Positions 33,194 through 37,128 of a stretch of 64,000 bases of DNA are shown here, one piece after another. The translations under genes and the position numbers were made by a program. The notes under the pieces were generated by a model. It searched no databases and was not told where the DNA came from. It saw only the letters and a list, made by a program, of their open reading frames with translations. Each line of letters opens with the position of its first letter. Position 1 is the first letter of the stretch. The stretch is from Oikopleura dioica (lineage: Eukaryota > Animalia > Chordata), in assembly GCA_907165135.1 (NCBI GenBank), contig OU015567.1, positions 6,386,001 to 6,450,000 of the forward strand. The letters run 5' to 3'.

Positions 33194-33458
33194 GTGGTGC
33201 AATTCAATTGCGTTTATGTGATGTTGTGCAGCGATCACCGGGTCAAACGCGACCCAGTTCTATAGAATTTTTTACTTATGAGCCGGACCAACTTAAACTC
33301 CGCCAAGTTCATGAAAAACTAATAGGTCAATTTCTTCTTCTGTTCACGGTTCTGTTTACTTAACTGAGACAGTTAAGTTATCAGCGGTTCATTAGGTTTC
33401 AATTCCATGCATACTACGCCTAATCACCATTTTTGTCTATCCTAAAAATGGGTCGATA

Positions 33459-33847
33459 CTGAATATGTAACGAATGTAACGAATGTAACGAATGTAACGA
33501 GTTTGCTGACAATGTAACGAAAACGGAGACATGTTGTTTTTATTAGCTGATTCTAGAAACTTTTTCTAAAGAGCGATCTTGGGGAGTTTTACTAAATACA
33601 ACAATTTAACATATCCAAAATAGCAAAAAAAGCCAAAAAGGATACAGAATAGCATAAATATGGTAGATTCGTTTTCCATACCCGCTCTGAATGATTCAAA
33701 ACGCCCGCTCCGCGGGTAAAAATGTAGGAAACTCAAGGGGGTGAAATTAGAAAAACAAAAAATCTCTAGAATTTTACTGACAATGTAACGAGAAAAAGAC
33801 ATGTTTATGAGTTTTCGTTACATTCGTTACATTCGTTACATATTCAG
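33459..33847. mobile_element. MITE with TA TSD (Tc1/mariner-like), 389 bp
   Basis: TIR CTGAATATGTAACGAATGTAACGAATGTAACGA, built from ATGTAACGA units and flanked by TA on both sides (33457-33458, 33848-33849). Confidence 0.85.
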
Positions 33848-33877
33848 TACCGTCGTAAAAATGCTCTTCAGAATAAA

Positions 33878-36063
33878 ATGTTTCGCCGGGCCGGTGTGGT
33901 CTTATCACAGCGGTTCCGCTCCCGCCAGGCGCTTGTCGTGCCCATGGTCGAGGACGGAACAAACCAGACCTTTCTAGAGCTGAACGAAAAGTCTGGCTCG
34001 ATTCTTCAGAAGCATCTTGACGCACTCGGCGGTCCACCAAAAGCCGGGCAGGTTAGGCAACTGCCCTCCTCTGATGACGAGTTCGACATCATCGCCATTG
34101 TTGGACAGAGCAACAAAGCTGACCCAAGCGAAAATCGGGATGTTAATTTGGAAAACGTACGAGCTGCTGTCGCGAATGGCGTCAAAGCGCTGAACGGACT
34201 CCAAATTGAAAAAGTTCAAATCGCGGTTGATTCTGAAGCAGCGCAGGCCGCAGGAGAGAGTGCTAAAATGACGGCGTGGACTTATAAAGCGGATAAACGC
34301 GAGAAAATCCCACAGAAATTTTCTGTTTTTAAAAAAGATAGTTTGGAGTTTGATCAAGGAAAGCGTTCAAAAAAATCGTTGTTGATTTCATCGATGTTTC
34401 AAACGACAAAAAATAACGCTGAAAAGGTTTAATTCTTGGTGAGGCTCAAAATATCGCTCGTGAATTAATGGAACTCCCTGGAAACTTATTAACGCCATCA
34501 ATTTTCGCGGATAAATGTGTGGCTCTTTTGGAACCACTCGGAGTAAAAGTAAATGTCTACGGAGCTGATTGGATTAAAGAACAAAACATGAATGCGTTTT
34601 GGTCCGTCGCAAAAGGCAGTAGTGAGGAGCCTAAATTTGTCGAAATGATCTGGGAACCAGAAGTTAAAAACCGAGAGGAAACCTTTGCTCTTGTCGGAAA
34701 AGGTGTGACCTTCGACAGTGGTGGAATCTCTATCAAGCCATCGGCAAACATGGGCGACATGCGAGGCGATATGGGCGGAGCTGCCGTCACTGTTGCAACG
34801 ATGTACGCCGCTGCCAAGCTTAAAATCCCCGGAAAAGTCCTCGCGACAACCCCTTTGGCCGAAAATATGCCCTCATCGAACGCTTCAAAACCGGGAGATG
34901 TAGTCATCGCGCGTAATGGAAAATCCATTCAAATTGACAACACAGATGCGGAGGGTCGTCTTTTGCTCTGTGACGCGCTAGGTACCAATCATTTTTTCCT
35001 CGAATCTTCTCTAATTTCATTTGAAATTCAGATTACACAGCCGAGGTTCATAAGCCAGCTGCGATGATTGATTCAGCAACATTAACAGGGGCTATGGTAA
35101 TCGCTCTTGGTGACGGAGCCACTGGCGTTTTCTGCAAAGACAACGACTTGTGGAATTTAATCGAGAAGAGTGGCCACGAAACAGGCGATCGAGCTTGGCG
35201 AATGCCCCATTATCAGCACTACTTTGGTGAGTGAAGCTTTCCTCAACCCCTTTTTAAAACGTGTCATTTACTGTAGAATCTACAGTGTAGATAAAATCAG
35301 CCCAACTCATAATGCCGAGTTAAACAATACTGGTGGTCGCGATGCAGGCTCTGCAACAGCCGCTGCATTCCTATCCGCTTTTGTACCACAAAATGTTCCC
35401 TGGGCTCACTTAGACATTGCAGGAGTTGGCGGCATTTTCCCAGGCGAAGGGGATCCCTTTCCTTATCTTTGCAAAGGAATGAGTGGCCGCCCAACGAGAA
35501 CAATTGTTCGAACGCTTCAAAATTTCTTCGATCCTTGAACTGCTACGAAATATATTGAAAAACTTATAGAATCACGGAAATAATTCAACGTCTAATTTTA
35601 GATGCGATATCTCCCACGCACAATGCTGATTTGAATAACACCGGTGGTCGAGCGGCAGGTATGAGTCTTCGTTGTTTTCCTCTTGGTTCACAGAGGACCA
35701 GAATATTGATATTTACGAAAATCTACAGAATTTATGACTAGAAAGACGCATCTTGGATCATGGAAGTGTTACCCACACGTTTTGTAATATTTGAATAAAA
35801 ATTATTTACAGTCTTCCCATTTGCGGAACATCCTCATTGTCATTTTCCATCATCATTTATTCTCCTCATGCTATTTTAATCCAGGCTCCGCTACGGCCGC
35901 CGGATTCTTGTCGGCATTTGTACCAAAGGATATTCCATGGGCTCATTTCGACATTGCTGGAGTCATGGACACGACTGGATCAACCAACCCTTACATTTGC
36001 AAGGGGATGACAGGAAGACCTACTCGAACTCTTTATCAAACCCTGAAGAACTATTTCAACTAG
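33878..36063 (+). CDS. LAP3: M17 leucyl aminopeptidase with two alternative C-termini
   Basis: R-rich presequence-like N-terminus, [46 protein letters not shown] and GRPTRT. Confidence 0.93.
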
Positions 36064-36187
36064 TCAACTCTTCATTTGAGCCTGAAATTCATAAGTTACA
36101 TGTAACAATTAATCTTAATTTAATTCTAAAAGAATAAACGCTCGTGCAAAGTTCTATAATTGTTGTAATCAATCTTTTCATCGCAGA

Positions 36188-37128
36188 ATGACTCGAGGAA
36201 CCGAGTCGGGAGACCAGCGAAACGTTGCCTCCGCCGCCAACCTCGGGGGATCCTGGAAGCCTGGCGATGATGCCGCTCGAACTCAAGGACACGTCGCTTA
36301 CGGACCATGCGAAGATCCCATCAAGCAGGAGGTGAAAACAAGGAGGAGATAACACTTTGACAATTTTTTCTAATTTCAGGCCCGAGATGCCAACTTTGCT
36401 GACATCGTCACTCTTCCCATTCTCCCAGAGCCCCAGCAAAATCCTCTCACTGCTGGCATGAACATGTGGAGATCTGGCGAGTTCTCTGCTTACGCACTCA
36501 AGGATCGAATTCTCGGTAATTTTTAATTATTGAAGAGCTGATCTGACTTGATCTTAGGATTCTGGCGATGGGCTAACCAGAACAACACCAACGGCGAGAA
36601 GTGGTTCCACGAAGCTCGCCGACGAGTTCCCGGAGTCTGGGAGTGTTCAACAAATGATCGAGCTTGCATTTACGAAGCTGAGATGCAGTTCAAAAAGGAT
36701 CGAGAAGTCGATCGAATGGTCCTTCAAGTTCTTGAAGACCGCCTTCGATCTGTAAGAAAAAAACCCTTTTTGGGCACATTTTGACATGCCTATCTAGTGC
36801 TGGAACGCCCAGGGATCGCTCTGGGGCGACCGAGACATGAACACAGAGAAATGCAACGAACTCGCCATGTTTAAGCGACAAGCTGATATGAATTACGCTG
36901 CCAAGTACCGAAATTTGAACCACTGGGGTGTCCAGTCCACCAAGGCTCTTATGAAGGTCCTTTCCTTCATTCCATAAAATTTGTTTAAAATCTTCTTTTT
37001 AGCAAAAGAACAGATTTATCGAGAAGAGATGGCTCGAACGTCAGGGAAAATCCTTCGACGAAATCCAAAACATGATGCACGAACCTCTTTCCCAGGCCTT
37101 CTTTTATGACATGTGGAAATGGGTATAA
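36188..37128 (+). CDS. NDUFB10: Complex I subunit NDUFB10 (PDSW)
   Basis: RRVPGVWEC..DRACIYEAEMQFKKDREVDRMVLQVLEDRLRSC..KC..KQKNRF parallels the NDUFB10 core, including its Cys pattern. Confidence 0.85.

Follow-up and report, generated by a model that had tools for sequence, protein, structure and literature searches.

A leucyl aminopeptidase gene of Oikopleura dioica with two tandem copies of its last coding segment, very probably used as alternative C-terminal endings

The last coding segment of a LAP3-type leucyl aminopeptidase gene (family M17) was very probably duplicated in tandem in the ancestor of several appendicularian lineages, with both copies kept as alternative endings of which the second (B) predominates and the first (A) is a minor form with a changed substrate pocket. 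The gene was delimited by three-frame reading on the plus strand at 33878-36063 of the window, by which is meant the whole stretch of 64,000 nucleotides of Oikopleura dioica DNA that was analysed (assembly OKI2018_I69, C5:6386001-6450000). The interpretation of the locus as one gene with two alternative endings is well supported by the selection acting on both endings, by synteny in related lineages and by the transcripts of those relatives.

Genome-wide searches covered the assembly of 64.3 Mb in 19 contigs, and the window exons were searched singly; full-length comparisons refer to database proteins. The gene model with ending B coincides exactly with the model chr2.g5716.t2 (P0227) of the OKI2018_I69 annotation. 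The features of the gene, in window coordinates, are as follows.

33870-33877, plus strand: trans-splice acceptor (AG 33870-33871) and 6-nt 5' untranslated region, placed in the window by homology
33878-34358, plus strand: coding exon 1, M17 N-terminal domain (Pfam PF02789, E 5e-10)
34359-34426, plus strand: intron 1, 68 nt, non-canonical GA-AG, junction deduced from P0227/P0060 and L016, with a boundary that may move by one base
34427-34983, plus strand: coding exon 2, catalytic core (translation; PF00883 profile positions 1-177, E 6e-69)
34984-35031, plus strand: intron 2, 48 nt, GT-AG, read from the sequence and removed in L016 and P0227
35032-35226, plus strand: coding exon 3, the last common exon, ending in phase 1 (PF00883 profile positions 181-241)
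35227-35290, plus strand: intron for the A form, 64 nt, read from the sequence, with the homologous junction spliced in P0191, P0196, P0204 and P0223
35291-35538, plus strand: ending A, 82 codons and a stop (TGA 35536-35538) (PF00883 profile positions 247-310)
35539-35601, plus strand: gap between A and B, 63 nt, lacking a canonical poly(A) signal; the homologous gap is present in the polyadenylated contig L016
35602-35658, plus strand: ending B, part 1 (B1), with the exon 3-B1 junction seen in the assembly protein P0227 and in numerous transcripts
35659-35884, plus strand: intron inside B, 226 nt, GT-AG, read from the sequence
35885-36063, plus strand: ending B, part 2 (B2), stop TAG 36061-36063, canonical DIAGVM loop type
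36133-36138, plus strand: AATAAA poly(A) signal 3' of B, whose homologue in L016 precedes a poly(A) tail

The end of exon 1 is set by the assembly proteins P0227 and P0060 together with L016, a transcript contig from a sister lineage of O. dioica that has about 82% DNA identity to the window. Every related transcript has the Oikopleura spliced leader at its 5' end, attached a few nucleotides before the ATG. The shared phase-1 donor that the original prediction had placed at 35227 was found there, with the refinement that 35226 is the final base of the common exon and that the donor GT occupies 35227-35228; the context of this donor is the same in four lineages. The acceptors all end in AG, and the phase-1 G at the end of exon 3 is completed by the AT that opens both A and B1.

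By its domains, catalytic residues and predicted fold, the gene is a member of the M17 family, and its product is a putative homohexamer with aminopeptidase activity. Both PF00883 and PF02789 score above their gathering thresholds, in the separate exons of the window and in full-length proteins, with 375 bits for the full-length A form P0191 and 382 bits for the B form P0227. The translation of exon 2 contains the whole set of metal-binding and catalytic motifs ([21 protein letters not shown], NTDAEGRL), and the corresponding columns are invariant in an alignment of 94 animal LAP sequences. The equivalents of the bovine residues Lys250, Asp255, Lys262, Asp273, Asp332, Glu334 and Arg336, which form the metal-binding and catalytic set, map to this exon. 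At the other end of the protein, the first 21 residues are basic and resemble a mitochondrial targeting peptide, with a second Met following them (33878-33943). Either Met serves as the start in database models, and the enzyme may accordingly have two start sites that direct it to two locations.

The two endings were described in the original prediction as intact paralogues, each with its own stop, and both peptides were reproduced exactly. Alignment gives 55 identical residues out of 78 and 152 identical bases out of 234 (65% of the DNA), a resemblance far above chance, and a six-frame search of the entire genome with A matched B2 at E 6.7e-21. The proportion of differing sites between A and B is 0.81 at synonymous positions (pS), which are thus saturated, and 0.21 at nonsynonymous positions (pN). 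A has three extra residues directly after DIAGV and one extra residue at its C-terminus. Comparison of the window with L016 gives dN 0.065 and dS 1.23 for ending A (dN/dS about 0.05), dN 0.014 and dS 0.91 for ending B (dN/dS about 0.015), and dN 0.053 and dS 0.89 for exon 2. The low dN/dS in both A and B indicates that both are constrained in the manner of ordinary coding exons and that neither is a relic; the possibility that A is a decaying pseudo-exon was rejected by this comparison with the sister lineage.

In three further appendicularian lineages, tblastn and motif scans of metagenome contigs reveal the tandem layout as well. Short open frames of marine metagenome origin, retrieved by a word search with A as the only query, fall into two signature classes according to the loop that follows DIA, with G-V-G-G-I/L-F-P in the A class and G-V-M-D in the B class. 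In the relatives, as here, one phase-1 donor after exon 3 is followed by A, by a gap of 46-82 nt and by B. The contigs closest to the window (L014/L015), in which A is 90% identical, carry a 66-nt intron (L014 about 526-591) at the same position inside B, and this intron is missing in two more distant species. One of the more distant species (L010-L013, exon 3 81% identical) has three tandem endings, each with an acceptor and a stop. The third of these (L010 6767-7003, also in L011 and L012) follows A and B and has its own loop type; no transcript carrying it was found. In another species (L017-L019), A is split by its own intron inside the loop and is then followed by B. This 66-nt intron lies within the A-specific loop of the ending A at L017 642-946, and it is removed in the A-form transcript P0204, as seen against the genomic records P0006 and P0017. 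In the genome of the present strain, the intron inside B (35659-35884) is single-copy in a search of the whole assembly, and the idea that its 226 nt represent a repeated introner-like element was rejected on that basis.

A maximum-likelihood tree of the endings places all nine A endings in one clade (support 98/93), which is nested within an appendicularian clade that also comprises B and the third ending (91/87) and is separate from the ascidian and other animal sequences. The existence of a single A clade implies that the A/B duplication is old, having preceded the divergence of at least six sampled lineages; the loop motif specific to A is kept in 9 of 9 A sequences from at least six lineages. 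The third ending clusters with B from the same species group (91/85) and is, to judge from the tree, a later copy than the A/B duplication. A second M17 LAP gene is present in the O. dioica genome at C5:13,245,000-13,249,000 on the minus strand (L003, L006, L007), and its catalytic core has 65-71% identity to exon 2. It keeps the pocket Met, and it also has a long loop after that Met; it differs in having a single ending with no tandem copy, and it is very divergent, lying on a long branch outside the A/B clade. The derivation of ending A as a copy from this second gene was rejected because of that position in the tree.

Evidence for the use of both endings comes from transcripts. Transcript proteins were gathered by searching with the long open frame of L016 and by including the members of 90% clusters, and the contigs, from metatranscriptomes and Logan, are about 1.5 kb long. 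Among the spliced and leader-capped transcripts, exon 3 is joined to A in P0191, P0196, P0204 and P0223, and it is joined to B in P0059, P0061-P0066, P0226 and many more cluster members, so that spliced transcripts with A or with B are available in four related lineages. Before the junction, A-form and B-form proteins from the same lineage agree at 410 of 411, 409 of 409, 419 of 419 and 408 of 408 residues in the four lineages respectively, and such matching upstream parts within each lineage are expected from the alternative splicing of one gene. There are 4 A-form contigs and more than 25 B-form contigs; contig counts reflect abundance only roughly, but they make B the probable major form and A the minor one.

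For the strain of the window itself, the record contains the B junction only (P0227). The assembly annotation has no A form and offers just two models, g5716.t2 (B) and the truncated g5716.t1, which uses an acceptor within the B intron and loses the last 59 residues. The A form is represented in public annotation by CBY13945.1. A further database protein, CBY39421.1 (P0181, 520 residues), is a chimera in which a cut ending A is fused directly to a complete ending B. Homology suggests that this strain would use A as its relatives do. A CAG at 35283-35285 lies 5 nt upstream of the A acceptor (TAG), and its use would lead to an immediate stop; in the other species there is one clean acceptor.

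These results can be combined most simply in a mechanism in which the duplicated segment, about 80 residues long and forming the C-terminal quarter of the catalytic domain, would be supplied to the enzyme by either of two splicing choices. The single phase-1 donor (35226|35227) would be spliced to one of two acceptors. If the A acceptor (35290|35291) is chosen, translation would stop at 35538 and whatever lies downstream would be left untranslated; if the B1 acceptor (35601|35602) is chosen, A would be skipped and translation would stop at 36063. Each mRNA would thus encode a full-length enzyme with one ending. Since A has its own stop, the two endings would be exclusive at the protein level with no need for a further mechanism. 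The A product would differ from the B product in that the nearly invariant S1-pocket residue Met454 (bovine numbering) is replaced and three residues are inserted beside it.

The original prediction had also described B as a canonical LAP3-like ending and A as having a longer loop after DIAGV, and both descriptions are borne out. In the HMMER alignment of the ending to bovine LAP, D-I-A-G-V-M corresponds to residues 449-454, which include Ala451 and Met454. In bovine LAP, Ile421, Ala451 and Met454 are among the residues that contact inhibitors, the last two of them touching the hydrophobic portion of a bound ligand (PMC7180978, PMC8151835). The column of Met454 is occupied by Met in 87 of the 94 animal LAPs, and four of the seven exceptions are A forms, which have Phe there; B keeps the Met. 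The three-residue insertion just before this column is found in the four A forms only. If A is instead read without a gap, the Met454 position is occupied by Gly. Two further motifs mostly separate the A clade from the B clade as well, with A-A-A-F-L and G-M-S-G-R-P in A versus A-A-G-F-L and G-M-T-G-R-P in B.

For the A form from a sister lineage, an AlphaFold2 model reaches a pLDDT of 88.5 and a pTM of 0.90, and it superposes on bovine LAP with a TM-score of 0.88-0.90 and an rmsd of 2.6-2.8 Å at 43% identity; the new loop, with a pLDDT of 66, has the lowest confidence within the C-terminal region. The superposition, taken together with the loop change, suggests that A is compatible with the M17 fold and that it would alter the wall of the pocket. 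It is therefore reasonable to infer, from the alignment and the model, that the A form may have a changed substrate preference. The existence of two specificities and of mixed hexamers is a hypothesis for which the predicted pocket change provides a concrete structural basis. A fuller version of it, in which A remodels the S1 pocket, the gene makes two aminopeptidases of differing preference, A and B, being identical in the rest of the subunit, co-assemble in mixed hexamers, and the arrangement has been kept in place of a second gene since before the main appendicularian split, is tentative and, taken as a whole, rather doubtful.

Alternative explanations of the locus differ in what they predict about the fate of the A mRNA, about selection on A and about the layout in relatives. 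If A and B were true alternative last exons, the A mRNA would be cleaved and polyadenylated in the 63-nt gap, and the choice of ending would be coupled to the choice of poly(A) site. Three of the four A-form contigs do stop 2-24 nt after the A stop, the weak hexamer variants AATATA and AATAAT occur in the window gap, and Oikopleura tolerates very short untranslated and intercistronic regions. However, a hexamer scan found the canonical AATAAA in the A-B gap of none of the four lineages, no A-form contig ends in a poly(A) run (the fourth continues for 105 nt past the stop and is likewise untailed), and the polyadenylated contig L016 contains A, the gap and spliced B in succession, followed by AATAAA and a tail. 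The intron preceding A is still present in L016, which for that reason is no productive A mRNA and may mix precursors and isoforms. The separate poly(A) sites that had been anticipated for the two endings are thus not supported so far, given gaps that lack AATAAA and a contig that reads through from A to B. A single poly(A) site after B, which would serve the A mRNA as well, is slightly favoured; cleavage in the gap nevertheless retains a substantial probability, short of an even chance.

It is also conceivable that the A acceptor is non-productive or regulatory, so that A acts as a poison exon which lowers the amount of B enzyme and yields no A protein of importance. The rarity of A forms among the assembled transcripts and the incomplete splicing around A in L016 would fit this, and if A mRNAs continue through B, then the spliced B intron would fall 3' of the A stop; a spliced intron downstream of a stop is the classic trigger of mRNA decay in vertebrates. 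A stop alone would suffice for such a role, yet 81 codons have been kept at a dN/dS of about 0.05 with dS above 1 between lineages, the A loop motif is conserved in the nine A sequences from at least six lineages, and the A-internal intron of one lineage is correctly spliced, all of which makes a purely regulatory A quite improbable. That A is a relic in this particular genome, no longer spliced in, with B alone in use, agrees with the B-type models of the assembly annotation and with an A acceptor that is weaker here (TAG, with the CAG 5 nt upstream) than in other species. It is very improbable in view of the intact open frame, stop and acceptor AG of A, and of the absence of any excess of amino-acid change on the window branch (A end branch 0.042; dN 0.062-0.065 to two sister lineages). 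The remaining explanation, that the tandem copies are an assembly artefact caused by collapsed haplotypes or a misplaced paralogue, has nothing found in its favour and can be given only a negligible probability: the copies share just 65% DNA identity, independently assembled metagenomes show the copies in this order in three other lineages, and the sole other close LAP gene (C5:13.246 Mb) is single-ended, on a long branch outside the A/B clade.

At 33454-33852, 26 nt upstream of the LAP start codon, there is a non-coding element of 399 bp whose terminal inverted repeats are 39 nt long and built from a 9-nt unit. It has at least 15 full-length copies in the genome, 78-98% identical and spread over five contigs; its copy number and identity suggest a young MITE family. 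The next gene begins at 36188, at a distance of 125 nt from the LAP stop, and is preceded by an AG that resembles a trans-splice acceptor. The same neighbour lies 3' of LAP in two other species (L010 about 7093; L017 about 1283), which is an operon-like arrangement, and its first exon has no Pfam match.

M17 leucyl aminopeptidases have been studied as housekeeping peptidases, as enzymes of the glutathione pathway and as drug targets, and their S1 pocket has been treated as fixed within a species. A search of the literature on Oikopleura in connection with aminopeptidase or with mutually exclusive exons turned up nothing about this gene. If the reading given here is correct, a whole animal class appears to exchange the pocket-lining C-terminal module of this enzyme by splicing, which would constitute a natural experiment on the way in which that segment determines specificity. 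The locus is also a well-supported example of tandem alternative exons in the very compact Oikopleura genome, and it carries a lesson for annotation, in which the A form is missing, the t1 model is truncated and the two endings are fused in CBY39421.1.

The closest known enzyme is the bovine lens or human cytosol LAP (LAP3; PDB 1LAM, 1LCP, 2EWB, 2J9A), which has the same two-domain architecture, catalytic motifs and fold, and the same DIAGVM pocket segment as the B ending; the A ending differs from it in replacing the Met454 equivalent and in adding three residues there. We know of no alternative catalytic-domain endings in the vertebrate LAP3 gene. Tandem exon duplication with alternative use is a known kind of event, and exons 9 and 10 of PKM provide a familiar case of adjacent homologous exons of the same phase, kept by selection, of which one is used per protein so that a functional part of an otherwise identical enzyme is swapped. 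The present gene resembles PKM in its tandem homologous exons, in the use of one of them per protein and in the identity of the rest of the enzyme. It differs in that the swapped part is the last coding segment, each copy of which has its own stop, in that B can stay in the mRNA as untranslated sequence, as in L016, and in that an intron interrupts B in O. dioica.
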